Shown here: one piece after another, positions 1 through 43,904 of the stretch
How positions within the stretch are numbered: the first letter of the stretch is position 1
How the letters are laid out: each line of letters starts with the position of its first letter
Source of the DNA: Takakia lepidozioides
Lineage: Eukaryota > Plantae > Bryophyta
Reading direction: 5' to 3'
DNA: 64,000 nt
Assembly (NCBI GenBank): GCA_030704615.1
Contig: CM060732.1
Location: 43,648,001 to 43,712,000 of the forward strand
Notes under the pieces: model-generated
The model's input: only the letters and a program-made list of their open reading frames with translations
Told to the model about the DNA's origin: nothing
Database searches by the model: none
Made by a program: the position numbers and the translations under genes

Positions 1-2612
1 TTTACGATCCGGATATCACCAGTTGCCGATCAAGGAGACGGATAAGCAAAAGACGCCATTCTGGGGGATCAATGAGCACGGGAAGGATTGCCTATACCAG
101 TGGCGGTTCTTACCATTTGGGCTTAAAAACGCTCCCGCTGAGTTTCAAAGAGTCATGGACAGGATTCTAGCAGGGGTGGAGTTTGCTTGGTGCTACATAG
201 ATGACATCATCATCTTTAGTGCTACGGTGGAGGAGCATGAGAGACACCTTCAGGGGGTATTTGAGCGCTTGAGGACGCACGGATTGAAGTTACATCCGGG
301 CAAGTGCAAGTTTTTCCATAACCAGATTGAGTATATGGGTCACATGATATATCCTGGAGGATTGGGGGTACAGCAGACTAAGGTAGAGTCCATTGCACAT
401 GTTCCACACCCCACGGATGTGAGCCGAGTTTGAGCTTTCATGGGGTTAGCAAACTATTACAGACGGTTTGTTAAGGGATTTAGTGCCATTGCAAAGGCTC
501 TAACTAAGCTGACCAAGGTGGACCAGGAGTGGCAGTGGGAAGATGAGCAAGAACAAGCTTTTCAAGAGCTCAAGGCGAGGTTGACCTCGGCGCCCATCTT
601 GAGACGACCTATCAGGGGGCGTCCTTTTCAGCTGCATACAGATTGGAGCATGCTGGGGCTTGGAGCGGTGCTCACACAGGTGGATAATGAGGGAAGAGAG
701 TTCGTAGTGGCTTATGCTAGCCGCTCGAACAATGCTGCAGAGTCTAAGTATAGCTCATATGAGGGAGAATGCTTAGCTGCAGTGTGGGCCGTGGCACACT
801 TCAGGTGCTATCTATACGGCAATCTCTTCACCCTTGTCACGGATCACCAACCACTCAAATGGTTGATGGAGTCAGACAAGCTTACGGGGAAGCTTGCACG
901 GTGGGCACTCATCCTTCAAGAGTATGACTTTCAGGTGGTGCATCGACCGGGTTTGGTCAATCGCAATGCAGATGGGTTGAGTCGGAATCCATGCACGAGC
1001 CAGCAGGATGACACTGGAGCTCGGTGGCATGGTGAGACGGACGAGGAGATGGTGCCCGGATGGCATACATCTGCATTTCTGTGTATCTTGGCAGCGGAAG
1101 GCCAGGTTGGACCTGCAACAGGGATGACTGTAGATCAAGTGTCTGAGGACCCTGAGGCCAACAATGAGCAAGGTGGCGCCAAAGATATACATGAGGATTC
1201 AGTTGTGTTGGACTACCTCCACACTGGAGACACTGCAGCCACTGTGACTGCCAAGGAGAGGGATCGGATCCTACAACGAGCCAAGAGGTTCAAGTGGGAG
1301 GGGACACACCTACTCCAAGTGTGGGAGGATGGTCGAGTGAGGATTGTGCCTCACCCAACACAGCGGGCACGGTTAGTGCGGCATGCCCATGAGGAGTTGG
1401 GGCATTTTGGGGTGCGACGCACTCATAGTCTACTGCAGGGGCAGTATTGGTGGCGTGGTATGCACACAGAGGTGCAACAATTTGTGGCTAGGTGCATGGT
1501 GTGTGACAGGGTGCGTGCTTCATTCAACGCCCCTACTCCACAATTGCACCCTCTTCCGATCATGGGATTGGGCTATAGGTGGAGTCTTGATTTCGCAGGG
1601 CCATTGTCACTGACCATGCGTCACAACAAGTACGTGTTGGTGATGGTAGAACACTTCTCCAAGTGGATTGAGTTGGTTCCATTGCCTGATAAGGCTAGTG
1701 AGGGAGCTGCGTATGTATTCTTGGATTGTGTGCTTAGCCGATTCGGTGCTCCAGCTGAGGTACTCACGGACCAAGGGAGAGAGTTCTTGGGGGAGTTTCA
1801 GGCTTTGTGTGACAAGGCCTTGATATACCACCGCACCACTTCTCGGGATCATCCTGAGGCCGATGGCTTGGCAGATAGAGTTGTTCAGACTGCGCAAGTA
1901 TGACTTGCAGAAGGGACACCTAGGGTGGGACCTTCAGTTACCCTGGTTAGCCATGGGCTACAGGTTCAGCAAGCAAGCATCACTTGTCTCCTTCTCACCA
2001 TACTTTCTTCTCTTTGGCCGAGAGCCGGATTTGCCTGCATCCATTCGCAGAGAAGCTGCTGCAGTTCTTAACCTTGACGATCCGGACGTGTGGGCACGTG
2101 CATGTGAGCAGCGTGCAGAATTGTTCAAGAAAGTCATGCCCATGGTTTTCGAAAACCTTGCCATCGCACAACACCGTGATACGTTGAGGTATGCTATCAT
2201 ACGTGGTGGGGGCTATCGTCTTGGGGTTCGGAGATTCAACCCTGGTGACTATGTTTACCTGCAGCAGACTGCTCCTACGACATTGGATGTGACTGCAAGA
2301 CGTGTTATTTTGAGGGTTCGAGAGGTCTTGCCCTGAGGCGTCTTGGTCTTGGAGGGTCGGGATGGCATAACTTGGAAAGACCATGTGCGTAATTGTGCGC
2401 CATGTCACCTTCCGAATGTCGATGGCAGGATTGACCCAAACCTGGCAGTGGTATCTGCAGGTTTGAGGTGCATGTTGTGTGGGTCTGCTAGAAGGGCAGC
2501 CACCATGCTGGTGTGTGATCGATGCTCTAGAGGTTGGCATATGGGCTGCTTGACTCCACCTCTTGAGATGGTTCTGGATGGGGATTGGTTATGTCCACAT
2601 TGCATTGGATAG
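1..2612 (+). mobile_element. Ty3/Gypsy LTR retrotransposon pol (RT-RNaseH-integrase-PHD finger), 5' part outside window, degenerate
   Basis: RT motifs PFGLKNAP and YIDD; RNase H TDWS/ECLAAVWAV/TDHQ/NADGLSR; integrase HHCC (HEELGH...CMVC) and core (LDF...TDQG); C-terminal C4HC3 PHD finger within ORF 2343-2612. RT-RH-IN order is diagnostic for Gypsy. In-frame TGA at 431-433 and 2334-2336 and a frameshift near 1890 inactivate it. Confidence 0.95.
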
Positions 2613-2861
2613 TGGGAGTGGATATAACCATGGAGGGCTAACAAGAAACGCAAGGCCAAGCTACTAGGGGACCTTGAACACACGAGGTCTTGACTCAAGT
2701 TCATAGATTGCAAGACGACGACTAACGATGGGGCTACTCTTGTACCTGGCCTCTTGGTCTATAGTGTTTGAGTACAACAGGGACAGTGATAGAGGACTTA
2801 GTACGGCTGTGGCTATTACATCTTGTAGCTATCTGGAGGTAGATGAACCTATCCACCAGCT

Positions 2862-2872
2862 AGGGGGGCGAT
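2862..2872 (+). promoter_or_regulatory. Polypurine tract of the Gypsy element
   Basis: aggggggcgat lies immediately upstream of the TG that opens the putative 3' LTR. Confidence 0.7.
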
Positions 2873-3401
2873 TGTGACAGACTTCTTTATTGTGCATATA
2901 TGTGTGGTGTGGTTTGGACAACGATGTAGTTATGTAGTGATACGTATGCGCACGACAGCTGTCAAGTTAAATAAGCACAGTGTGAAAACAACTAGAATAA
3001 AGCTAGTTATTTGTATTTAACACTTGGATTTAGGTCAAGTGTTAAATCAGGTGTCAAGTTTAGTTTGACACCTGAACCGCCTTATCTTCACGAGAGCGGC
3101 AGTCGCGCAGCTCATCTCTCTCGAGTTGAGCCTGCGCGACCGAGCTCCTGCATCGTTTAGGACTGAGTGTGCTTATGATGGGAGTATAGGTTGTTGTGGG
3201 GTGGAGTCCCCATAGCTTGGGGTGCCCCTGGCTCGACTTCTGTTTTAACGAGTGATAGCGATGGATTTCATGTTGTTTCTGGTGTGAACAGTGTGTCTCT
3301 TAGCTTGTTCTATCATTGTGGCAGACTACTTTATTGTACATATATGTGTGGTGTGGTTTGGACAGCGATGTAGTTATGTAGCGATACGTATGCGCACGAC
3401 A
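2873..3401 (+). repeat. 3' LTR of the Gypsy element (TG...CA, ~529 bp)
   Basis: Starts tgtgac after the PPT and ends gcacgaca. Contains an 87-bp direct repeat at both ends and several hairpins. The 5' LTR is outside the window, so the boundaries are inferred. Confidence 0.7.
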
Positions 3402-3934
3402 AGGAGTTGTCTGTGAGCAAAACAATGACATCAGAGAGAATGGTGAGTTGTTTGTAAATCTCACCTCAGTTGTAAATGAGTCTGCATGTGTCAGTGGTGT
3501 GCACCCATTAGGATGTGTGAGCGGGTCCATTCGATTGCACATGATTCCTTTAAACCTCCACTTCATGACAACCTGCCTTTGCATTTATTTTCTTGCAACA
3601 TCGTGGTTGTGGTGATAATTTTTTTTCTCATTCAATATTGCTGTTGTTGACAGAAGGCAAGTGAGGGCTACTGTAGTATCATGCGCAAAGTCGAGCAGCT
3701 AGGAAGAGACACCACAAGTCAGCGAGAAGACATCATGGATTTGAAGGCTTGTGTCTTGCAGATGATGCTTTACCAAAAAGCGATAGCCAACAAGTTTGTC
3801 ATCTCTATATCAGTGTCTCCGGCTGTGGGGACATTTGCAGCAGCCAGCGAGTGCATAGACGCAGCTCGCACATCCAGGCGCCTAGAGGACAACTTCGAGA
3901 CACCCCCTGCAGAAGGGGGGAGCTGATGGAAATG

Positions 3935-4590
3935 GACTACCCAACCAGCAATTTCCACCAGCCACCGTTTGGCCCAAGGAATCTAGGAAGCCATTTCCCC
4001 AACAGGGCCTGAATTTGAGTACTCGGGTCAAGCACCCCAAGGCCCTCCTTTTTCTTAGGAAGGCAAATCTGGCTCCATGATACCTGGGCCCTCTTGTCCT
4101 AGGTAGATGATTGGGCACCCCATATGAAGTTTCTAACACATCTCTTGACTTCTTTAATGAAGTCAGAGTCTGGACCCCAGAGGGCGAATTCCCAAAATGC
4201 CTAAATGAGAGCTGAACAGACTAGAGAAGAAAGAGAAAAGGGAAGAGTGGCGGGTTTGCTTGAGCGAAACGTTGCTATCGCTGGAGACGGCGGCGAGGAT
4301 GACCAAACTGGAGATAAACCTTTGGTGAGGAAAGATGAATGAAGGAAGAGGGATGAACATCAGGTGAGGGGTAAACGCAGCGATGGCTGGATCAGTGAGC
4401 ATATCAAACGAAGGAGAAAAACGTGGAATGAACAACAAGGAGATTAATGTGAAGAAGCTTAGGAACAAAGACTTCCGTCTGAGGCCCGAGGTCCATAGAG
4501 AGGGTAGAAATGACCGTTGGAGGTGCTTCCGCAAACCGCGGAGCTCCGCCATCGCTCCTTCCCCCCATCGTAGTCTCCCAGATTATAACA
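3935..4590 (-). mobile_element. Internally deleted L1-clade LINE remnant
   Basis: Minus strand ~4160-3935 translates to RNFIWGAQSST*DKRAQVSWSQICLPKKKEGLGVLDPSTQIQALLGKWLPRFLGPNGGWWKLL, the typical plant L1 ORF2 post-RT signature (FLW...W..IC.PK..GLG). It is joined to a pyrimidine-rich 5'UTR-like stretch; the extent of that part is uncertain. Confidence 0.7.
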
Positions 4591-5074
4591 TTATAGAAAA
4601 GAGTGAATGAATGAGAATCCCTAAGGTGACTATGTTATATATATTTCAATAGAAAATGAAGAGGAGATTATTATTATAACATGAAATTTATAATACTCAT
4701 ATTGAAAAAAATATTATATCACTATATCGTTTGATATGTCTAATACTTTAATTTTATGTCAATGAATCATAATATTGATTACCTTGGAGTGTTTTCTGAT
4801 GAAGACACATCAAAGATCTTCCCTCAGTTTGGCAGTGATGAAAAAAAAAGTAAAAAAAGTGACGATGCCTGGTTTCCCTCTTGAGTGAGGAGCAAACAAC
4901 CATGAGCCTCATTGGAATTTGGCATGTCCCAAAACGTTTTGGGTTCATATTTATCATGGACCTGCTGCCTTGTTTATGGATACTCGAGTCTAGCCAAAGC
5001 AGGTTTCATCCATTCTCATTATTTTGAAAAGTAGAATGATCTGATTGTCTCAACATGCTCTCTGACTCAAGAAG

Positions 5075-5078
<4 letters not shown>

Positions 5079-5113
<35 letters not shown>
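5079..5113. repeat. (GA)n microsatellite
   Basis: Directly visible run of about 17 GA units. Confidence 0.95.
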
Positions 5114-5115
<2 letters not shown>

Positions 5116-8100
5116 CAGTAATTGTTGTCGTTGGTGTTGGAGGTGGAGCAGTAAGGTTGCTGGATGGTCAACTAAACAGATCGCCTGTTTGCACGTGTGT
5201 GAATGAGAGAAAGCGGATGATCCGTTCAATTCTCCAAAGGTGAGTGAGCCTGGCTCTGGCATTGCCAGCATGTGCAGGTCCAACCTCAGGCTTTGCATCC
5301 ACCAAGTTGGACATCGATATTTGGTCCTCCCAACTGTGAAAGTCGGGCCTGATTATTATCACCATCGACAGACAACTGATCTGACCGGGATCTGACCTAG
5401 GCCTACTTACCTCCATTGCTTTTGGCTCCACGCAGGCGCAGTCCGAGGCCTGACTAACTTAACCAGAATAGATTTCTAAGTTTATAGCCACACCGTGCAA
5501 GTATTTTCCTGCAGACAGAGACTGAGAGAACCATTCCCAGTTCAATGTAGCCGTGGGGAGTACATAGCTGCTATCGGATCAAAGGCGTATCAAATGCCAT
5601 ATCCGAACCAACTCCCGATAAACCCAACTGCAAGCTGTGGGTCCCTTATCGGGAAGTGTGAAGGGCAGAACCAATCACCGCTGTGTGCATTGTGCCTGAT
5701 TTGGATCTGGCCAGCTGCGTGCAGCGCCTTGAGTGAGTCATACCGTGTGAAGGGCTCCCTATCAGGCTGGCGTATCCACCGTTTCCTCTCCCTCGTGGCG
5801 GGGCCCCTGATTCATGCTGCCCACAAGCTACAGGTAGTCTGACCTTTGTACTTTTTCTGCGGCGAAGTATACAATTCTGCACGGCACATTGCCTTCTAAC
5901 CAACAAGCTGGCACACTTTTTGATTAGGCTAAGGAAGCCCAATCTCCACGCACACTGGTAAGTTAGTACTAAGCGACATGTGCGTAAAATGGGTTCCTTT
6001 CCTACAGAAATACCGGCTGTGATTTTTCAGATGTACCAAGAGGTACCAAGGGGACACCATTAACTTCACTCCAAGAGTTTGTTTCTGCTAGCAGGGTCAC
6101 CAACTCTGACTTCTGCCATACCCAGGTAACAAAACCTGAGCTAAGTTAGATATGGCAAACGCCCTTATCCAATCTTATGTTCCTCGTCCCCGGAAGTTCG
6201 GGGCAGATTGTACACAGCGGATCGAATGACATAACTTGGGTGGACGTTGGTGAGTGGGGTAAATGATTTGCCTGCAGCTAACAGCTTATTAACAATGGTT
6301 TAGGTCACAGGTGGAAGAGATTAAGCTGGGAATAAATTTCGAGCAGAGTGAATTGAATGTCCTGAAGAGGGAGACAAAACCATAAAGGCCATCTGTGAAG
6401 CAGGCGTACCTTGCTTGCATAGCTGCTCTGCAGTGTGCACTGCCATGCTCAACCTGGTCATGGCGTCATCAAAGCTTAGAATATCATTATATACTCCGCC
6501 GTCGCCTGCCGTGCTTTGTCCTTGCTTATTATTCTCCTTCGACTGGGCAAGTGCTAGCTTCTGTTAGGCGAGTCTCTGAAGGTCACTTTTAGATGGCCAG
6601 ACTGGCCCATGCCACAAAGCAGTACTGAAAGCAAGTATTGAAGGAAGGAGATAGATACATCATCTGCTATAAGCTCCTCGTATCTAAATACATACACATT
6701 TAATGTTTGAGATCCGTATGATTTACATACGTTCTGTTGTCTTGATAGTTGTAACTGTGTGCAAACTGCAAACCCAATGTCGGTTATCTGAATTATTCTG
6801 CTCTCATGGATGAAACATGAAACGGCTACCTCTCGTCAGCCGTCTCGTCAACTACGGAAGATAATGGAATCATGTGGGAGTCCCTCTGTCATCTCTATTA
6901 GCTCTGCCAAAGACTTCCATCATCATTGACATTGTCCTATAAGTTTCTAGTGCTGGTGATAAGTGATCCGTCACACATATCTATTTAGTTTGGAAGGTCC
7001 GAAGGCAGATCACAGGGATGGTCTGGCAATCATCGTCCGTAGCGAAAGAGAATATGTGCTGCATCGTGTGCCTCGACTCCATGCGTATCGTTCGAAGCGA
7101 GCCGATGCTTGACTCTTCTCCTACAGCCATGCGATAAGGTCTTAGTGCCATACACTTTTGGTCCCTCGACCTTCCCGACTTTGTGGTGTAAGTACAAATT
7201 CGGCAAAGAGTGCCAAGTGCCAACTACATATAATAGGTTTCTTTGCAGCATATATTGCCGGTTCGACCACATCTGGTTCACCTGGATCGATAAGGATGTT
7301 GGCAAGGACCAGATATAATTAAAAATTTATGGGTTATGCTGTATTGCACAGATCTAGAGAACGTCTATGGTCAGGTACTACCACTAAAGTGTGTCAGGCT
7401 TATCACGGCTACCTGAATCATGAGGAGATTGAACTGTGGTGGCAGTGGCTAGCTCGCCCATAGGCTGCGGGCCGAGCGACAGTAAGTTTGCAATATTCCA
7501 AGTTTATTTGAGTTCCATGTATCTGCTGTGGCTCACGCGTGAGTAGGTATGTGCCTTGACCATCTTTTCAGCGGATATAATATTACCTCAGCACGTGTTA
7601 TACTTGACATTCTGATCAGTGTGACACTTATTAGAAGGCTTAAGACTATCCTGCTTCTCTGCCAGATGTCTAGACTGGTCTAGAGTTCATGATATGGTCG
7701 TCAATTATAACATATTGTGAAATACATGTTCAACTTATTATTACTCGAGGTACGACTTACAGGCCTATGTGGCATTTTGGCACTTCCTATTTTGGCCACT
7801 ATTCATGATACCTATTAGTCGTTGAGCCCGTCATTGTGTGTCCCACTGTAGTCTAGAATTTGCAACCAGATCTACCATACCTGCATCGGGAACGCCTTCC
7901 ATTATATGCATTGTCCTATAATGATGAGTGAGAGTATTTCGAAACTGAGGCTGATCTCGAACTTCTTCATGAAGATTGTGTAGTTTTTTAGTTTGGGCTT
8001 GTTTGCATATAGGGCAAGCCATGATTTTGCATTGAGCGCCTGAACGATATTGTACGTACGGTTGGACAAAAGAAAGTTCCTTTGATAAATGTTCAACAGG

Positions 8101-8661
8101 AATGCAGAAATCTTGTTCCTGGGAGCATGCACTATGTAGAAGATCATTGAGCACCGAGCTTTCACTCACTGAGTCAGTGATGGAGAAAATCGCTTACAGC
8201 TAGTACGAAACGTCCAAGCTATGTTGAATGCACTGCCATCACCTGTAAAGGATGGCTTGTATACAATAGCAAATGAAGAAACTCGTTCTTTTCTTTGCAT
8301 AAGATGGCCAGGAACCTTCTTCTTCAGAATTTCTCATGTTTAAACTACGTATTGACTGTTCCACGCTCACGATCTAGTCAAGACTCGTGAACTGCTAATT
8401 CTTTTATGACAACTGCACGCTTTCGGATTCAGTACCGTCAAGTTGAACTACATTCATATAAAACTGGCAAACTACGTCAAGTGCATTGATCTAGCATGAC
8501 TGCTTGCTTACTCGTAAGGCACTGGTGGCGCTGCCAGCATAGTCGTGACACGTTTCGGGCTAGCAGAAGTAGATTCACAACTCTGTTTTTGTGCGCGCAA
8601 TGACACCAGTGTACCATATACATTAGTGCGATACACAACGTTTGGGCGCCCGCTTCAGGCT

Positions 8662-10392
8662 TTAGTTACCTTTCGGAGGGTGTGTTTGAGGGTCCCTGTA
8701 GTCTATATTGATGTCGTCGATAGAATCAATTGAGTCCAGTGTAGAGTTATTTTCTGGTAATTTTCGTCTGGCCCTCCGTCTATTATCGGATGAAGTCCTG
8801 CTACTAGCAATCATTGTGACCTTCAGGACTTCGATCAGAGATTGCAAAGGACTGGTTGAATGCGTCTCCAGCACTTTATACCAATGTGGATGAAGAGCAT
8901 TTCGGGGGACCCGCGGGCCTTGCTGCAGTCGCTTTCTATCTTTGTAGCTGTGTGTCTTTAGGATATCATCTGCGGGAGCCTTTGTGTGCAGCTGCTGCGT
9001 CCTGGATGGTGTGCTTTTTCCTCTGAGCATCTGCCAAGTTGATACCAACAAACCCAGCTGTGAGATTCATGAGCTATATATGAGGAGGGATCGATCGAAA
9101 TTGCACTTTGACAATTAGAATGGCGAGAATATGAGTGAACAATTCTTGAGTCCTGATCTCCAGCGAACAGTCCACTGAAACATGGGGAAAATGAGAGAAG
9201 AAAACAAGTGTAGTTCAATGCACCAACAACCTTCTGTAGTGTATACAGTCTATCTAAGGAATATGAAAACTCGAACATGTGGAGAAATGGAAAATTTGTA
9301 AAAGATACATGTACAACGTTCAAAGTCAAACTGTGTACATCTTCACGCGGTTGTATCCCGATGAGCTACTAGAACAGCAGATATCAACCGTGCACTATCT
9401 GTAATATATGCACGATCCCTGGGCCGATCTCCACTTTCCTATGCTGTCTCTTGGACGTAAGGAGCGCGCAGCTGCAATTACTCTCTGGTGTATTTTCTAG
9501 TGGCAGAACGATGTTCAGAGGATATTACGAGAATATAGCAAAGGCTATTAAACACACGTGTACCTTTGTATTGAAGGAAACTCCATCCAATCTAGGTAAT
9601 GTCATGACGTCCTCAGTTGATGCTGCTTTAGACTCGATGTGAATGGGTAAATGATGAACTCCTGCACAATACATCAGCTCTCCTGCGGTCACAATACTTT
9701 TCAAGCTCTGTAATCCCCCCCAATTCGATTCTTATAATTCAATCCGTCCCCCTTCTCATTTTTACCCCGACCGTGGCACATGTGTACAACAATTATAGGT
9801 AGCTGTCTTTTTGACTCAGTTTTGGCATATAGGCCCATCTAGAGGCAGGAAGTCAGCACAGCTCGAACTTCATGTTCCGCTGTGATCTGTATAAAAGGCA
9901 CGACTTTCACGGGCATATGTGGAGACGTCGATCTTCACAGCTATTAGCTTCCACAGAAATTGTAACACATTGTTTCCGAAGAGCTGAACGCAATTGTCAT
10001 ATTCATAGAGCTCATGTGCAACTGTAATCCATGTAAACGTAAGCACGTCGTGAGTTGATGTAATTGACACAGGTAGAAGTCCTTCAGGACGGAAACTACA
10101 CCAGTTGTTCCATCTTGATCGAACGTCACTGAACTCACGTCAGTACTGTACAGTAAAGTCGTGTTGGACTCTTCAATTGGTGTGATCCCCGGCTTTCATT
10201 GCGATGGTCTTTCTCTAGAGACGCCTGCAAGCTTACCCATGTAGGCCAGCGTGATACAAACTTACCAGAAAGATGTTGGCGGCTGGCAGAAGTGGAAGAT
10301 GAGAAAACGACCATGAGGGCTATGGTGGAGCACCAGAAGACCGTTGCTGGCCTTACGGGCTTGCTTGCTATCTTTCTTCGTGTAGTGACCAT
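8662..10392 (-). CDS. RGF: RGF/GOLVEN/CLEL-family secreted peptide precursor (~197 aa, 3 exons: 10392-10266, 9661-9564, 9030-8662)
   Basis: Exon 1 MVTTRRKIASKPVRPATVFWCSTIALMVVFSSSTSASRQHLS is signal-peptide-like and ends at TG|gtaagt (phase 1). Exon 2 runs tgcag|GA...AAG|gtacac (phase 1 to phase 0). Exon 3 starts ttggcag|ATG and ends ...INIDYRDPQTHPPKGN-stop. The 13-aa C-terminal motif matches the RGF consensus (Arabidopsis RGF1 DYSNPGHHPPRHN). Confidence 0.85.
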
Positions 10393-10741
10393 TCTGGATA
10401 TTTGGGCATGGTTGCACAGCAGCACCCACAACACACACACAACACGTCTACTCTAAGCATAAGAGTTAACCAATTCCCACTCTCTCAAAACATCGCCGTT
10501 TAAATTTGAGGACACCTGAGATCTAGGATTGGACACAGAAGCAGGCACTTGAGAGCAAGACAAGAGAGCGAGGGAGTGAGACAGAAAGGCGCCAACGAAA
10601 GAACGAGAGTGGCAGCCAAGTGACGGCAGCAATGCAACGACAATCCTATGGGCCGCGAACTGCAGGGAGAGTCAAAGCGACCTGTAGATACTTCTTCGAA
10701 GGCTCAGAGCACAAGAAAGATAGCTAGATACATAGATCGAT

Positions 10742-10774
10742 AGAGAGAGAGCTAGAGAGAGAGAGAGAGAGAGA
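10742..10774. repeat. (GA)n/(CT)n microsatellite upstream of the RGF-like gene
   Basis: Visible, interrupted GA run. It is CT-rich on the RGF sense strand, as is common in plant 5' leaders. Confidence 0.85.
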
Positions 10775-13700
10775 TAGGCTGTGGGGTATGCAGCAGTCCT
10801 GCTTACTCCCCAGAGTAGGTCAGTAGTCAGGGCACAAAAGGAGAGGCAAAAGTGATGATCTATGCGAGCAGCAGCAGACTCTCACAGCTGGTCTGCAGCT
10901 TTGCCAGTCCAGATGGAACTCTCTTCTCCCCCTCCTCCTCTAATACCTTTGCAAACTCGCACACCACCACTCTCTTTCACCATCCCTCCTCCTCACCATC
11001 TCTCTCCTCCCTGACACTCCATGTGCTGTGGCTCCCCGTGGCGAGCGCTCTGACCCCTTTTCGCCACATGGGGTTGGTTTCGCCCGGGCCACCATTCAGT
11101 TTCGCCACGTGATTAAACCATAGAATACTACTAAATTACTCCATCATTGGCCTCCAATTTCCTCCACGTCGCTCCCCATCAACGAACTTTTCAACGCGAC
11201 GCTGCCCACCCCCAAAAATATCAGTATTCTAGTTTCGCCATCTGCCTCTCTCCCATTTATTAACCCGCCGCAGTTTCGCCCCCCGGCGAAACCCCTTAAA
11301 ATAGAATACTTGCCATCGTACGCGGTATGGCTCTGTAGGGCCCCGTCTACAGAGCGGGCACGTGCGTATGTACGATCCCAATTACGCATATCGTACATCC
11401 CGTACACCGTCCCTACCTAGCTGCCGACCCATATACCTACCTACCTACGCGTGGATGGGAATATACGAATATACATATTCATTTGTAATGTATTAATACG
11501 ATACATTGTACGTATAGTTTATGTAGAGGAAGTCATTAAAGAGCAGTTCGTTATCATTGAATATGGAATCAGCAAATGCTTGCATTAAATGCTCAAGCAC
11601 CAATTGTCTAGCATTTAAATAAATGAAAAATTACTTTACATAAAATGGAAATTAAAGAGATACTGTTGTATATACTGTACAGACAGTCAACTACCCCGGT
11701 CCAACCGACAAAGTTAGGGTTGAAATGAAGTTTGGTTGCGTATGTCCCCTCCCATGGGACCAATGAATCGGGTGTAAGCTTAGGGGACACGTTCCACAGC
11801 GTTCCTTTTATTTGGAGTTTTTTATTGGGAGCAGGACAAAAGAGGGGGTGCAGTTGCAGGAGGGGACAAGGGTGGAGGGCCCGGCGGGCCACGGGCCGAG
11901 GCGGTGGGTGACGGACGTCCGTTACAGTCCACAGATTGGGATGCCCAACAGTAACGGAGCGGTTGCAATCGCACCAGTTCATTAACGGAAGTCTGTAAGC
12001 GCACGTGTGTCCCGGGAGGCGCGCCGTGTGTGTGGCCGGCAACGTCTGCCGAGCAGGCAGCGTGACCGGCGCCGTCTGTCGGCCATACTTCTGCCTGTTA
12101 CCACCCACTATCAACGAATGAAAGGTGCCCCACTTGTCGCAGCACATCCGTTTGCTTGTCATTCGTCTCGGTTTGATTAGGGCAGTGAGTCGTTGAGCTG
12201 CACTCTGACGGACGGTCAGAGAGACGAGTCGGCGATGTTGTCTGTGAACGAGTTCTGAATGCTGGTGAATTCACACAGCCCTGCACTGGAAAGGAGCTGA
12301 AGGTCAAGATTGGAAACTGTAGCTAGTTTGGATATGACGATCGCATGACTTAAGCAGTTGAAAATTGATCTATCAGCCCCAATTAGTCTTAGCTGCAATT
12401 TAATCTTGAGCTGTAGTTTTCCAGGCTTATGGAATTTCTGACATGCTACATGAATCCGATGTACGGAAGTATTCAATTCTGAGAGGGCAGGATGGCCTTA
12501 ATCAGGAGTGAAATGAATGGGCTCCGGCCTAGTTCTAGATCCCGGAAATCGCAACCGATGGAAGCACTTGTAACCAGACTGGGCTGGCATTACACTGGTC
12601 TGGAAGCGCTTGTACATCATTAAGAAAATGCTTTAACAAACCGACTCGCCCAAGCAATGAACATCCCCCAGATGTATCCGGACTTCTCTTTCCCAAGACA
12701 GTTCGGATAGAAGGATGTTTGCAATAAATATGATTCAGTACCAGCATCGCCCCATCTCGAGATTCCTTTGTCGAGTCTGCGCTCGCTTGAATCTGAAGAC
12801 CAAGTACATAGCTCCCATATACAGGAAAACGTCCGGAGGAAGGCAACAATATGGTACCCAACTGATTCTTCAGTGGTATATTGAAGTAGCTATACACGTA
12901 TTGTGGCATATCTTTCGCGACGACGCGCTGTCTGGCTTGTATCAAGCCTGAGCTGAGAACAGGTCACAGGATTTTGTTGAACGACTCATGTCCTTTGACG
13001 CTTACCGAGCGTTACTTTCCTTTAGGCAAGAACTAAAGGAATTTCGTTGCTGCTAATCACAATCCTCCACACAATGAACCGGACAGGTCTCATAACCCAT
13101 AGGCTGGACATTCTAAGAGCTACTTTTGATATGCGCCAAGTAAAATAAAGAAATTCTTGTAATTATGGATTTGATTGGAAGTCGTAGCCTATGCTTTACG
13201 TGTACAGCTCTATCTAGATAACTATCTAGTCCGAGGAGGTCCTCCCTAATTTGCACTCGAGAAAGTTGAAAGTCAATCCATCGCGTACAAGGAAATAGTG
13301 GGTCCCGTTAAGAGTATCCTGTTAGGCAGTTTCCTTTCCCGTCGCTATAAGACACTGACTGAGTCAGACCAGATCCCCCATTAGGAGCTGGATGGACCAC
13401 CCCTGTAGTATAAAACAAAGGCCTACGTCACGAATTTCATCTTTCGTGTGGCCAGAAGTATTATCACAGCGCTAATGTTTTGCAACGTCACGTCAGGAAA
13501 ACAAACCGAACGGGTGCTTGCATGGTACGTACTGGCCCTTCTTTGCAACAGTGACTAGTTGGTGCTCGTACCAGCAACTTGTACTTTTGGCGTTAGCTAT
13601 AGGCGTCTCACGATCACTTGGGTAACCGTGTCCACTGCCATCTGTCCAATACAAGACGATTGAAAGTCTTCCAGCTACAGATAGACCAGTGCTTGCGGCT

Positions 13701-16334
13701 GCATTGATGCATCCCATAATTTCCGTAGGTGGTCAAGTCAAGTCCACATCCTAATTAACCTGGATGTTGAACGTACATGGGGGCCGCGGAATGTGAATAT
13801 GCTTACTCGATTTTCAATCCTGTCCGGCCCTTGAGGTAGTCGCCAGCAATAAGATGAACATGTGGTGTGCGGTGTGGTAGCCAGCCACCGGCAACTGGCT
13901 GATTGTAACTGAAAGAGTTCATTATTGGGTATCGATTACAACTATGTACGTGTTTACCGCCAGTTCAGTTCCAGACACTTCTGACGGCATGGGTGCTGCA
14001 AGCTATGTTGGAGATGTTCGTTTCCTAGCTACAAAACGGTGAAAGGAGGGTGCGGCTTGGTTTTGAACAGGTTATATCTATTAGGCCCCTCACGAATAAA
14101 CCGTGTTTTTTCCCCAGCTTGAATCCTGAGTATAAGGGCATCTGCAACAATGCAAAGTGTGAAACTTGTTAAATTAAGCTGCTAGTCGTGTGATGAAGAA
14201 TGTTATGAAGAAAGGCTCAATTGATGGTTTTCTCGGGCCATCCATTCAGAACGAGACCTGGAACATGGTAACGATAACATGATCAGCTCGTTGTTCTGGT
14301 TCAGCAAACAGCCCGTAGATGGAAGCTCTGAAAATGCAACAACATTCTACTCAGTTTACCTGACTTCGGACTCCGATTCCTGTAAGTACGCCTCGCAGTG
14401 CAGTACTATCGATCAATACTGAGTCACCAAGTCTGTCTAGATGATCCCAATTTAGTAAGGTGGTATGCTCCACACTTGTTGAGCTGTTCGGATGAGGTGA
14501 GACTTCCACGCAAAACGATCGTCCAGTTCATACTTTCTTCATTTCCCATTAGATCAATGCACACAGGACCCAGTGCACAAGTGGGGCATCGGCTAAGCTA
14601 GGTTTGTAGACTGAGACTATAAGAGCCTCCTCGAGCCTGCATGACATCCGTGTGGACTCTAAGATAGAATCATGTATGTATCCAAAGGAAAGAATACTAG
14701 ACCTTATGCTGTGCCTCTGCTGTGTCGATGAATTCGTTTACTGCAGCTGCGTTTGAGAGGTGTTCCATGGCCAAAAAACCTCTACTACCAATCCGCATGG
14801 CGAGTCCACACTCTAAGTGGTCATTCTACTTCCTTTCTTTCATCTTCTTCTTTCTCATCGATCAGGCCATACCTGAAAACTGTAGCTCGAAGCAATGCTG
14901 CACCTTTTTTGATAAAACTTAGCTATGGCTGACCAAACAGTAGGATCAACTCTGCTTGGGCAGATGAGCGGGCAGCATGGTCAAAATATTAGTATACCTG
15001 GACTAACCAACATTTAGGACTGTTTTCAATAATAAAGGTACCATACTGGTTCAGTTTATGTGCCGACAGGTTCGATCACAGCACCATTCAGTCATAATAT
15101 TTGTGAACTTCCAACGTACTCATAATACTCATCAACTACTACACACGGTCTGTAATTTCCAATTCTGTTTATTCAGAAGATTCATCCTGAGCTACAAAAG
15201 CATGACGCCTGTAATTTGGGGTTTTTCATAAGAGCCAAATGATTGTCTTGGGTCTGATCGGAAAATCCAGAAGAAAACAAAAGGCCACCAAGAATCAAGT
15301 TGCAATGCTGCTGGTGGAGTCTAATTTGGGAATGGAATCCGTCGGCCGAAGTACCACACACGATGCGTTGTTTGGTGTATTATAGACGCGCCTGTGACGT
15401 TGTTGCTGCGGTGTCATGCTATTGGGCTTTGGTGTTCACTTTGAAGTGTAAGGGAAGCGACTCTTTTGCCATGAGGGTTGATAGTTGTCGTGGAAAACAC
15501 ATTGGAACATTGATGTAATCTGCCGGTTTTAGGTCTCTTACTGCATGTGGAACGTGCTTGCCCATTATGGCTTTGACAGTCTGCCCAAACTGAAACGACG
15601 GGACAAGTGTAGGGTTTCATTTGGTGATTTGCAGAGCTTCTGAATGTTCACAGATGCGCCAACCGGGGTGTGGACAAAACTTGCTGTCTACAAATAATTA
15701 CGCTCTGGAATGGTCCGGGCAGAGGACATTCTGCCCGGTCTGCTGCCCGTCCGGATATTCATTCCATAGTACATGATGGATGGGTAACTAGTACAAAGTC
15801 TTATTTGATGAGAATAATAAAAATAAATATACATTAATAAATATATCATTTTTACAGGTCAGTGAAGTCATCCATGGTAGGATTTGGAGAATGGGTTGAG
15901 GTGAACTGCCATATCCAAGTTGGATGAACTATAAATTCCATCAAAAAGTAAATTTCCTTCCATAGAAATTGAGAGGGAAATCTATTAGTAAATAGTTTTT
16001 TATTGTTTTTATTGTTTTTTTTGTTTTTTTTGTCTTTTGGTGAACAGGGAGTTAGAAGGTTGAAGCTCTTCCGACAAGCATTTTCTCTTATTAAAAAATT
16101 GGGGTGGAGCGGTGCCCGACGTGCCCGGCCCCTTTTAACTTTATTTGGGGTTTATTTGAGATGAACCAATAATAAAATAAAATTGCAAGGAAATTTTGAT
16201 TGAAATATATATAATAAAGGGGATTTTTTTCCTTTAAAAGGAAACCTGGGACCTACAGATCACACTTCAATATGAACAGGGGACAGAGGCCCTGGAGTAT
16301 TTTATTAAAATTATTGAAGGGAAAAATATTAAAA

Positions 16335-16590
16335 CCCTTATAGGCACATGGCCGCCATAAGGCCCAAACGCACGGTAAGCGGATACTCCGGGGACTGTAA
16401 CGTTTAGCAGTGGAGACGAGGGGGGAAATATTAACCCACTTTCATTTTAAGCCATGAAGCAAACTGGAGACAGCATCCCCGACTGAGTGGCCGCGAAACC
16501 ATAGTACATACGGTAGTGCAATTAGCAGGATTTGAGCCCCAAACCATGAGAGTGATATCACACTGTACTACCTCCCTCAGTGGACAGAAG
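16335..16590 (-). mobile_element. Degenerate tRNA-derived SINE related to the copies at 45.0 and 46.3 kb
   Basis: Minus strand has the B-box-like ggggctcaaatcctgcta and the downstream block atgaaagtgggttaatatttccccctc, similar to atgaaagaggttattttctcctctc in the 45-kb copy. Confidence 0.5.
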
Positions 16591-18208
16591 CTCCACTTTA
16601 TTTAAAGGGAAAAAAAACCCCCATAATTTATTATTATTATTATTATTGAGAAAGTGACCAGATGGAAGAGAAAAAGAAAAAGTTCTCATGGTGTGGGAGG
16701 TTGGGTCGTTTTTCCACTGCTTATGAGCCTCATGGTGTTGGGGGTTTTAATTTTTTCCCCAAATAATTCCAAATAAATTGTTCTCCTGGCCTCTGTCCTC
16801 AGTTTTGGAAAAACAAATAATAAAATAAAATAAAATATGAATATGAAAAGAAAATTATCAAATGAGGACACCGTGGACCAATCATAAATATCAAAACAAT
16901 TTGACAACAAAACAATATAAAACATACTTTTTTAAAACAATAAAGCAATCTATTTAAATGGCTTGCCCTTATTATTAATAATTATTTTAGTAAAAATGTT
17001 ATTATTATTTTGAGATTGAAAATCTATGGGCTAATCTAATTTATAATAAAGTTCTACCAGGGCTACTAACCCCCTGTTATCAAAAAAATAATCTAAGGGC
17101 GTCCTGATCCCCTTTTCCCCCTAAAAGAAAAGAAAAAAGAAAAAAGAAAAACCTATCCTGTTAAACTGAGACCATAGAAATAGAAATTAAAGGAGTGAAC
17201 ATTTTGATGCCGTGGAATATGTGGTCTCGGGCAGACCGCGAAACCCTGACTAAGGTTGAGTAGCGGTAAAGCTGGATGTGTGCGCGGCCATAGCTGCCGC
17301 TCCCGCAGCCTGCTTCTTGCCCTCCCCATGTCAGTAAATTCGTGGCGGATTGTTAGACTTGGCACGCTTCTGCTGTGAATCATCGTACACACCTGCAGGT
17401 CTGCCCTTTCTCCCTCAATTTTCTGCTTGAAATAAGGTGGTCACATCAAGTCAAAAGTGTCAGCAGTCTGTGAAGGGGGTGGGGGGGGGCGGGGGGTTGG
17501 GTAACAAAACGGCCAGGAGTTTAGGGAACGGATTGTAGAGTCAATATTACCCTGAGTTTATGATGGCCGACCCCTGCATAGGTGCATGGTGAGATTAGGC
17601 TGGTGAGATTAGGCTCTGGTGTTCGGGGTAGTTCTTATGAATTAAGAAGAGTATGCATGGTGGTAGCAGGGGTTGGGATTCTTGGTTTGAAAGTTTTGCA
17701 GGTACGATGGATTTCTTCTTCCATCATTTGTGATGGAATTTGCATGCTGGATGCTGTTTGTACAGGATCGTAGCTTTGTCAGTTCACGGCTCGTCTGGAG
17801 TTAGGAGTGAAGGGTTTAAGGGGCAGTCTCAAGGAACGTTTCCACATTCTGGGGCTTTTGAATGCTTTTTTGAACCTTTTGACCATGCCTTCTGATGGAT
17901 GGTCCGCAGATGTAGGATGTGAATCCAAAACCTAAAAGATGTGTGTCACACTGTTAGGTTCCTAATCCTTCCCCAATCCTCCATGAACGAATCCTCCATG
18001 CCAAGCTTTTGGGATTCATTTAGTTCTCACGGGTCGTGGAATCCCTCTTTCAGAATAGCCGAACCCCCTTCATTCCTTCCTCATCCATGGCACTGTTTCA
18101 GGTGTGCAGAGATTTCTAGGTTTGCCGTGCAGGTTAAAGGACAATCCGCTGTCCCATCCAGTCGAACTGCCCAGGGTTCAAAAGCTTTAAGGAGCTGGGA
18201 AGTGCGGG

Positions 18209-36499
<18,291 letters not shown>

Positions 36500-41863: not shown

Positions 41864-43904
41864 ATGGCGTCGCTTAATGGAACTTTGTTCACGGCACTCC
41901 TTGCATTTTTAGTGACGGCTCATTGTTGTGCTGCCCTTGAAATGGGAGCAATGCCTATCGACCTTTCAAGGAGAGGCCTAGTAGTGCACAAGGGAGATAA
42001 TTACGTGCGCACCGACAACAAAGTCGACAACACCACTGTAAGTGATTTGGGGGGGGAAAGAACGATCACATGTTTGAAGGTTTATCAAGATAAATTCTTG
42101 TCACCATGCAGTTCTAAACTCTTGGTCAACTTGACGTCTAGTGGACCCAATTTCCTAAGAACCTTGTTGGATGACATGCCCGTGACATGTCAAGGTCAGA
42201 TCAGTTTAATATTGCGACTCATATTCTCGCCTTCGAAAATGTGTTTGTTAAATTTCCAGGTCATTCGAGGTGAGCTGATCCACAGAGATCATCCATCGTC
42301 GCCACTTAGCCCATCAACACCCAAACCATTTTCAGAGAGGATTGCTGACGCTGTGAAGAGAAGTTTGGAGCGCAGGGACAACATTGCACGCACCATCAAG
42401 GCCACTGTAACAGGTCTGCAAAGTTCGGTATTAGCTGGTAACGGAGAGTATGTGATGGAGATCTCAATCGGTACCCCTCCACAGAAGTTTTCTGCCATTG
42501 TAGATACTGGAAGTGATCTGGTGTGGGTACAGTGTCTGCCTTGTACATCGTGCTACCAACAAACTGGCGCAAAGTTTGAGCCCGAGAGATCAGAAACATA
42601 CGAAGGAGTGGATTGCAGCAACAGTCTATGTCAGGTATAGCTAAGTATTGTATTTGGCGCTCCAATAAAAAGGTCTTGAATTCCAACTTAATAACTTGTT
42701 TGGTTGTCATTTGTTATTCGAGCGCCAATATGCAATGCGGGCGATGGTAGTTAATTAAACCAAATGCGATTTCCAATCCAAATTTGTGAAATATTTACAG
42801 TCTAGACTTTTTGCTCAACCCTATAATAACATCTGGAAATGCCATGTGATTGTCTCCAGGGCCTTCCTTCTCGAGCATGTGGATCCTACTGCCAGTACGA
42901 GTACATATATGGAGACCAATCCACCACGGCTGGGGACTTTGCGTATGAGACGGTCACCCTGGGCGAAACTGGAATCCACAAGGTTGCCTTCGGGTGCGGG
43001 CATGACAACCAGGGGTGTTTTTCAGGCGTTGGAGGACTTGTGGGTCTAGGACAGGGCCCTATTTCTCTCCCCTCCCAGCTGAGCTCAAGCATAACCAACA
43101 TTTTCTCTTACTGTTTGGTTAGCTTAACCACCGCCACAACGACAACGAGTCCCATATTCTTTGGAGATGTGACACCTTCATCAGGCATCCAGTACACCCC
43201 TTTGATCTCCAATCCTACCAATCCATCATTTTACTACGTGGGGGTGAACGGCATCAGTGTAGGAGGCCGAGATTTGAGTATCCCAGCGGGCACCTTTGAC
43301 ATCGATTCTTCGGGAAATGGAGGCGTTATTCTTGATTCTGGAACCACACTCACCTACTTGACCCAAAACGCTTATGACATCGTGAAGCAGGTTAGTCTTG
43401 TCAAACACTCTCTAAGATCAGTACAATATCAGCTCAGCTTGAAATGTGGACAATGCTTTAGCCTTCGTAACTAGTCATTTAGCGATACCTCGTTGTGCCT
43501 TGTTTCTCATGGTATTCGACAATCACATCCAAGTCCTATCGTCTTAATATACTGACAAATGTGTATCACTGTTGCTATATCTACAGGCCTTCCAGGGTGC
43601 AATCACCTACCCGACTACTGATGGATCTTCCTACGCACTGGACTTATGCTATGATGTTTCTCGAGAGGCCAATTATCCTACCTTCCCAACTTTGGTTATG
43701 CACTTCGCCAACGTTGATTACACTTCAACCCCTGAGAGCAATTTTGTGTTTGTGGACGACGCCAACACAATCATCTGCCTGGCCATGGTGAGCTGCCTGG
43801 ACTTCAGCATCATCGGTAACATCCAGCAGCAAGATCACCAGTTCGTGTATGATGTTGCAAACCGGCAGATCGGAATCGCTGATGTGCAATGTAACACCTT
43901 GTAG
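41864..43904 (+). CDS. Secreted aspartic protease, A1 family, nepenthesin/CDR1-like (~465 aa; exons 41864-42037, 42260-42634, 42860-43390, 43587-43904)
   Basis: Signal peptide; propeptide LIHRDHPSSPL; GEYVMEISIGTPPQ...IVDTGSDLVWVQC (first catalytic Asp); ILDSGTT (second catalytic Asp); C-terminal IIGNIQQQ. All three GT-AG introns are phase 0. Confidence 0.93.

Follow-up and report, generated by a model that had tools for sequence, protein, structure and literature searches.

In flowering plants, RGF peptides act as regulators of the root stem-cell niche. Arabidopsis RGF1/GLV11/CLEL8 (DYSNPGHHPPRHN) is a 13-mer carrying D1, Y2, P5, H8, P9, P10, and N13; its precursor contains a signal peptide as well as subtilase sites, and RGI1-5 act as receptors of the mature peptide. 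The RxGG motif of the RGI receptors reads the sulfotyrosine. Across the family, the mature peptide is defined by D1, Y2 (sulfated), and the invariant P10 and N13, with P5, H8, and P9 being highly conserved (Furumizu and Sawa, 2021; PMC8329595). Group H members, which have H8, occur in all land-plant lineages. Among mosses, RGFs are retained only in early-diverging species (PMC8329595); they have been lost in the Bryophytina and in hornworts, and P. patens has neither RGF nor RGI. Functional data from bryophytes come from Marchantia polymorpha, where over-expression of MpRGF (DYAEPDTHPPESN) caused dwarfing, while the same peptide gene produced RGF-like root phenotypes in Arabidopsis (PMC8329595). 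In addition, MpRGI complements the Arabidopsis rgi quintuple mutant.

The closest described system is from Takakia lepidozioides itself. Furumizu and Sawa (2021; PMC8329595) searched the 1KP transcriptomes for RGF-like sequences and obtained two from this species, SKQD-2078083 and SKQD-2063992; for scaffold SKQD-2078083, the sheet 'Mosses' of their supplement gives the 16-mer INIDYRDPQTHPPKGN. We found no paper that brings Takakia and RGF together in its main text, the species being present only in a figure and the supplement of PMC8329595. Here, we describe a locus in a 64-kb stretch of T. lepidozioides DNA (referred to as the window) that contains an expressed RGF/GOLVEN-type peptide gene with three coding exons on the minus strand.

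Identity with the published Takakia sequence

The protein predicted from the window is the published one. The 197-aa translation of SKQD-2078083 (PMC8329595) is residue-for-residue identical to the joined translations of exon 1, a glycine, exon 2, and exon 3, and the terminal 13-mer DYRDPQTHPPKGN is found unchanged within the published 16-mer. The agreement extends to the nucleotides of the 3’ UTR where these are printed: the first 32 nt of the scaffold match the plus strand of the window exactly at 8069-8100, with no such match expected by chance, and the roughly 350 nt of the scaffold shown in the supplement agree with 8069-8418. The window accordingly represents nuclear DNA of T. lepidozioides or of a strain almost identical to it. 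An earlier reading of the DNA, made from the sequence alone, had assigned the gene to the RGF/GLV/CLEL family and its host to the bryophytes. Both assignments hold, given that the model equals a published RGF-like protein of T. lepidozioides and that all defining residues are present.

Other parts of the sequence-only reading have been overtaken by the literature. The ligand, taken as probably unannotated or mis-annotated, had been published in 2021 from a 1KP transcriptome (PMC8329595). The KGN ending, which had been singled out as unusual, is a known moss signature, since moss RGF-like peptides are stated to end in R/K-G/S-N (PMC8329595). An ancestral role outside roots had likewise been discussed before, and experiments with MpRGF and MpRGI had put part of the idea to the test. 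The gene, the peptide, its ending, and the evolutionary argument are thus already in the literature. SKQD-2078083 is, however, known as cDNA only, whereas the window adds the neighbourhood of the gene, its exon-intron structure, and a 594-nt 5’ leader with five upstream ATGs, together with an alternative acceptor giving rise to a second splice isoform; exon-intron structure, isoform, and leader are new here.

We also searched a collection of 5.8 billion proteins with exon 3, using a word index and a length window of about 67-213 aa, which is wide enough for the 197-aa product. This search returned 12 word-sharing candidates, none of them at E <= 0.01, from a collection that may not contain the gene set of this genome. 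The result is equally compatible with a missing gene model and with the proteins of this genome being absent from the collection.

Gene structure, transcripts, and surroundings

The gene comprises the following parts, with coordinates referring to the window and a slash marking the exon boundary at the donor:

8069..10986, minus strand: whole transcribed unit, defined by a 1649-nt contig from run X1, contigs from run X2 reaching 8125, and the start of the 1KP scaffold at 8069
10393..10986, minus strand: 5’ leader, 594 nt, with five upstream ATGs
10266..10392, minus strand: coding exon 1, 127 nt (42 codons plus 1 nt), donor CTG/GTAAGT
9662..10265, minus strand: intron 1, 604 nt, with an alternative acceptor AG at 9684-9683 that moves the start of exon 2 to 9682
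9564..9661, minus strand: coding exon 2, 98 nt, phase 1
9031..9563, minus strand: intron 2, 533 nt, GT..AG, joint 9030/9564 in both runs
8662..9030, minus strand: coding exon 3, 122 codons plus stop, phase 0, containing the variable prodomain, basic site, spacer, and peptide
8069..8661, minus strand: 3’ UTR, about 593 nt, from contigs and the 1KP scaffold

Translation starts at the ATG at 10392. Exon 1 encodes MVTTRRKIASKPVRPATVFWCSTIALMVVFSSSTSASRQHLS and leaves one base over, exon 2 in phase 1 encodes G followed by VHHLPIHIESKAASTEDVMTLPRLDGVSFNTK, and the three exons join in phase to give a precursor of 197 aa, as established by phase arithmetic and by reading against the published protein. 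Use of the alternative exon 2 acceptor yields a precursor of 204 aa instead. The splice sites of both introns are GT..AG. Given that the mRNA ends near 8069, the 3’ UTR measures about 593 nt, and the spliced mRNA has a length of about 1.78 kb.

Transcript evidence was taken from two public T. lepidozioides runs belonging to two studies, X1 (2017, a multi-species study) and X2 (2021). Both runs are recorded as 'RNA? (a guess)'; that they contain RNA is evident from their deepest contigs, which lack the introns. Of the words sampled from 8400-10800, about 70% are present in the two runs, and contigs from both were compared with 7900-11300 of the window. These contigs omit exactly the two proposed introns, whose plus-strand ends, CT..AC, correspond to GT..AG on the gene strand. 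A single X1 contig of 1649 nt spans 10986-8201 with both introns absent and with zero mismatches; the junction contigs of both runs carry 0-2 mismatches to the window. Low-depth contigs lying within the introns have the appearance of unspliced precursor or of carried-over DNA. An apparent gap in the contigs at 10712-10784 was considered as a further intron and rejected: the tract is a masked CT repeat within the leader, and the X1 contig has the same 73 letters at this position.

While joint 9030/9564 is present in X1 and X2, the two runs differ at intron 1, where X1 shows joint 9661/10266 (604 nt skipped) and X2 shows joint 9682/10266 (583 nt skipped). With its acceptor 21 nt further 5’, the X2 form gains the in-frame residues ELMYCAG, so that its prodomain is seven residues longer. 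Both junctions foreseen from the sequence (10266/9661 and 9564/9030) are therefore found in spliced contigs. An alternative in-frame acceptor had also been suggested for exon 3, 27 nt to its 5’ side; the corresponding AG (9059-9058) exists in the DNA and is unused in X1 and X2, the alternative acceptor that is actually used, as seen in the X2 contigs, belonging to exon 2. X1 may be the same 1KP data from which the published scaffold was derived, in which case X2 alone provides independent confirmation.

The leader preceding the coding sequence is rich in upstream ORFs (uORFs). The last of these, at 10460-10368, has 30 codons and overlaps the main start codon. Because five ATGs precede the main start and one of them opens the overlapping uORF, translation of the main frame may be inefficient. 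The context of the main ATG, AGAATGG (A at -3, G at +4), is at the same time the best among the ATGs of exon 1. The composition of the leader hints at translational control of the RGF precursor.

The gene sits among transposon remains. An ORF encoding a Gypsy RNase H, an integrase zinc finger, and an integrase core is located at 440-1903 (plus strand), and a separate chromodomain ORF at 21693-22316 (plus strand) also belongs to Gypsy-type remains. The plus strand shows a sustained positive GC skew of 0.11-0.21 over 1-4000 and 16000-36000, as if elements had been inserted in one orientation. Two adjacent ORFs at 41864-43474 (plus strand) carry TAXi_N, TAXi_C, and Asp domains and most likely represent a pair of exons from a gene for a nepenthesin-like secreted aspartic protease. 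At 24243-24375 (minus strand), we observed a decayed fragment of a bacterial-type large-subunit rRNA, which covers model positions 2667-2799 in the sarcin-ricin loop region and scores 50.7 bits against a gathering score of 50; an 'evalue' scan of 22500-26500 did not recover it. The fragment probably goes back to an old insertion of organelle DNA into the nuclear genome. Finally, 34721-35128 (plus strand) contains two 204-nt units in tandem, which share 83% identity, within a 206-aa ORF (34820-35440) that has no Pfam match.

Precursor architecture and comparison with other RGFs

Three features of the precursor can be placed on the window:

10285..10392, minus strand: predicted signal peptide, residues 1-36, with a basic n-region, a hydrophobic core, and a TSA/S cleavage site
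8758..8781, minus strand: RRRARRKL in the exon 3 translation, a candidate SBT6.1/site-1-protease site (RxxL), followed by PE
8665..8703, minus strand: predicted mature 13-mer DYRDPQTHPPKGN (Group H RGF), directly before the stop codon TAA

The N-terminus has five basic residues within positions 5-14 and a hydrophobic core at 18-30 (Kyte-Doolittle 11-residue mean of 2.1 over residues 18-31), and the predicted cleavage site TSA/S, made up of small residues, follows residue 36. This call is heuristic, combining hydropathy with the (-3,-1) rule applied by eye, and it agrees with the signal-like segment proposed before. A scan of the three exon translations against Pfam, with E values up to 10, found no family; short peptide-hormone precursors generally lack Pfam models, and disorder is expected in this one. 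The RxxL rule for SBT6.1/site-1 protease was established in work on Arabidopsis GLV1/CLEL6 and RALF23, and RRKL is a candidate SBT6.1 site because it fits this rule. RRRARRKL stands 18 residues ahead of DY, from which it is separated by an acidic spacer, PENNSTLDSIDSIDDINI. The 13-mer itself carries D1, Y2, P5, H8, P9, P10, and N13, i.e. all residues that define the Arabidopsis RGFs, and the stop codon follows immediately after N13. At 197 aa, the protein fits the range of RGF precursors (about 100-200 aa). The outline drawn from the DNA, with three exons in phase, a product of ~197 aa, RRRARRKL, and a 13-mer before the stop, is thus borne out in every detail by the exon translations.

The nearest relatives are the RGF-like proteins of other early-diverging mosses. 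Similar to the Takakia gene, Andreaea rupestris, Sphagnum spp., and the second Takakia sequence, SKQD-2063992, share a C-terminal DY..P..HPP(K/R)(G/S)N. Peptides ending in QTHPPKGN, as in the gene described here, are found in Andreaea and Sphagnum, whereas SKQD-2063992 contains DYRDPETHPPRGN, which differs from DYRDPQTHPPKGN. About 20-30 residues upstream of the peptide, the early-moss precursors have RRKL(P/G)(E/V), with GV in one Andreaea sequence and PE otherwise, so that the RRKLPE of the Takakia gene recurs in Andreaea and Sphagnum. An HP(H/Y)W motif in the prodomain is likewise common to Takakia and the early-moss precursors, notably Andreaea, while the prodomains are otherwise dissimilar; these comparisons were made by reading published sequences by eye rather than by a computed alignment. 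Among these relatives, it is mainly the peptide and the cleavage site (RRKLPE) that are conserved.

MpRGF belongs to Group H, like the Takakia peptide, is identical to it at 8/13 positions (D1, Y2, P5, T7, H8, P9, P10, and N13), and lies at the C-terminus of a precursor with canonical cleavage sites, as in Takakia. However, liverworts have one RGF gene, with peptides nearly all ending in SSN (ESN in M. polymorpha), whereas Takakia has two, with peptides ending in K/R-G-N; and MpRGF is backed by functional data, while the Takakia gene is known from sequence and transcripts. Arabidopsis RGF1 shares all seven conserved positions with the Takakia 13-mer. Takakia has G at position 12, where Arabidopsis has H or N, and the Takakia precursor is longer (197 aa).

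Alternative readings and possible function

We consider it very probable that this nuclear locus encodes one of the two Group H RGF/GLV/CLEL precursors of T. lepidozioides, published as Tale SKQD-2078083. The assignment is supported by two features common to early mosses, the DY..P..HPP(K/R)(G/S)N ending and, upstream of it, the RRKLPE site. Membership in another family of sulfated DY peptides, such as CIF/TWS1 or PSY, would imply signalling through GSO or PSYR rather than RGI. Such a confusion is understandable, as CIFs resemble RGFs in their initial DY, their richness in proline, and, often, a final Asn, and the two are sometimes hard to distinguish. CIFs, however, have about 21 aa and the pattern DYxxxxPxPPLxxPxPF, and PSY1 has 18 aa, whereas here exactly 13 residues, DY included, lead up to the stop codon and PPLxxPxPF is absent. 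The Takakia 13-mer instead has the RGF-specific P5, H8-P9-P10, and N13, CIF and PSY lack the HPP..N end, and specialists of the family class the Takakia sequence as RGF-like (PMC8329595). We consequently regard membership in either family as very improbable. That the motif should have arisen by chance at the end of an unrelated ORF has nothing but the shortness of the motif in its favour, and we give this idea practically no weight. A search of all six reading frames of the 64-kb window for the strict RGF pattern (DY, P, HPP, N) gave a single occurrence, at 8665-8703 (minus strand), and no other RGF motif; in 200 shuffles, the pattern was seen 0 times. In addition, the mRNA is spliced, the architecture is conserved in other early-diverging mosses, and the identity with the published sequence likewise refutes a chance ORF.

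A different concern is that the transcript is real and the 197-aa frame is translated little or not at all, either because it acts as a regulatory or non-coding RNA or because the gene is being lost, as happened in later mosses. The five upstream ATGs of the leader, with the last uORF overlapping the main ATG, would fit this scenario, as would the loss of RGF in Bryophytina and hornworts. Nevertheless, the 197-aa frame is intact over three exons and preserved by both isoforms, the best start context is that of the main ATG (A-3, G+4), and the peptide, the RRKLPE site, and the HP(H/Y)W motif are conserved with Andreaea and Sphagnum. To judge from the sequences, this conservation argues for purifying selection on the protein, and we consider an untranslated or decaying gene highly unlikely.

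If the locus encodes an RGF precursor, as we propose, its maturation can be modelled by homology on that of the Arabidopsis RGFs. The precursor would enter the ER co-translationally and move along the secretory pathway, where Tyr2 of the DY motif would be sulfated by TPST in the Golgi. A subtilase of the SBT6.1/S1P type is predicted to cut after RRKL, and a second protease, in another subtilase step, would remove the 18-residue spacer and expose Asp1. One proline within HPP may be hydroxylated. The secreted 13-mer would then bind an LRR-XI receptor kinase of the RGI/RGFR type, with the RxGG motif of the receptor presumably reading the sulfotyrosine and its RxR motif the terminal Asn.

The presence of RGFs in rootless plants bears on the role of this signalling module before roots existed. 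The literature has already raised this question on data that include the present Takakia sequence, and work in Marchantia is addressing it. To this picture, which remains unchanged overall, the window contributes a confirmed genomic model of one of the two Takakia RGF genes, comprising three exons, two isoforms, and a leader rich in uORFs, and the model is useful for annotation as well as for the design of knock-outs and reporters. The five upstream ATGs with their overlapping uORF and the alternative acceptor adding seven residues would point to control after transcription. Takakia is not known to have roots or rhizoids. We tentatively suggest, as a rather doubtful extension, that the gene is missing from the released gene models, that its output is set after transcription, and that the peptide acts in the growth of the shoot axis or the apical cell. 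If this were true, Takakia would provide a clean rootless and rhizoid-less system in which to study the ancestral role of RGF-RGI signalling.
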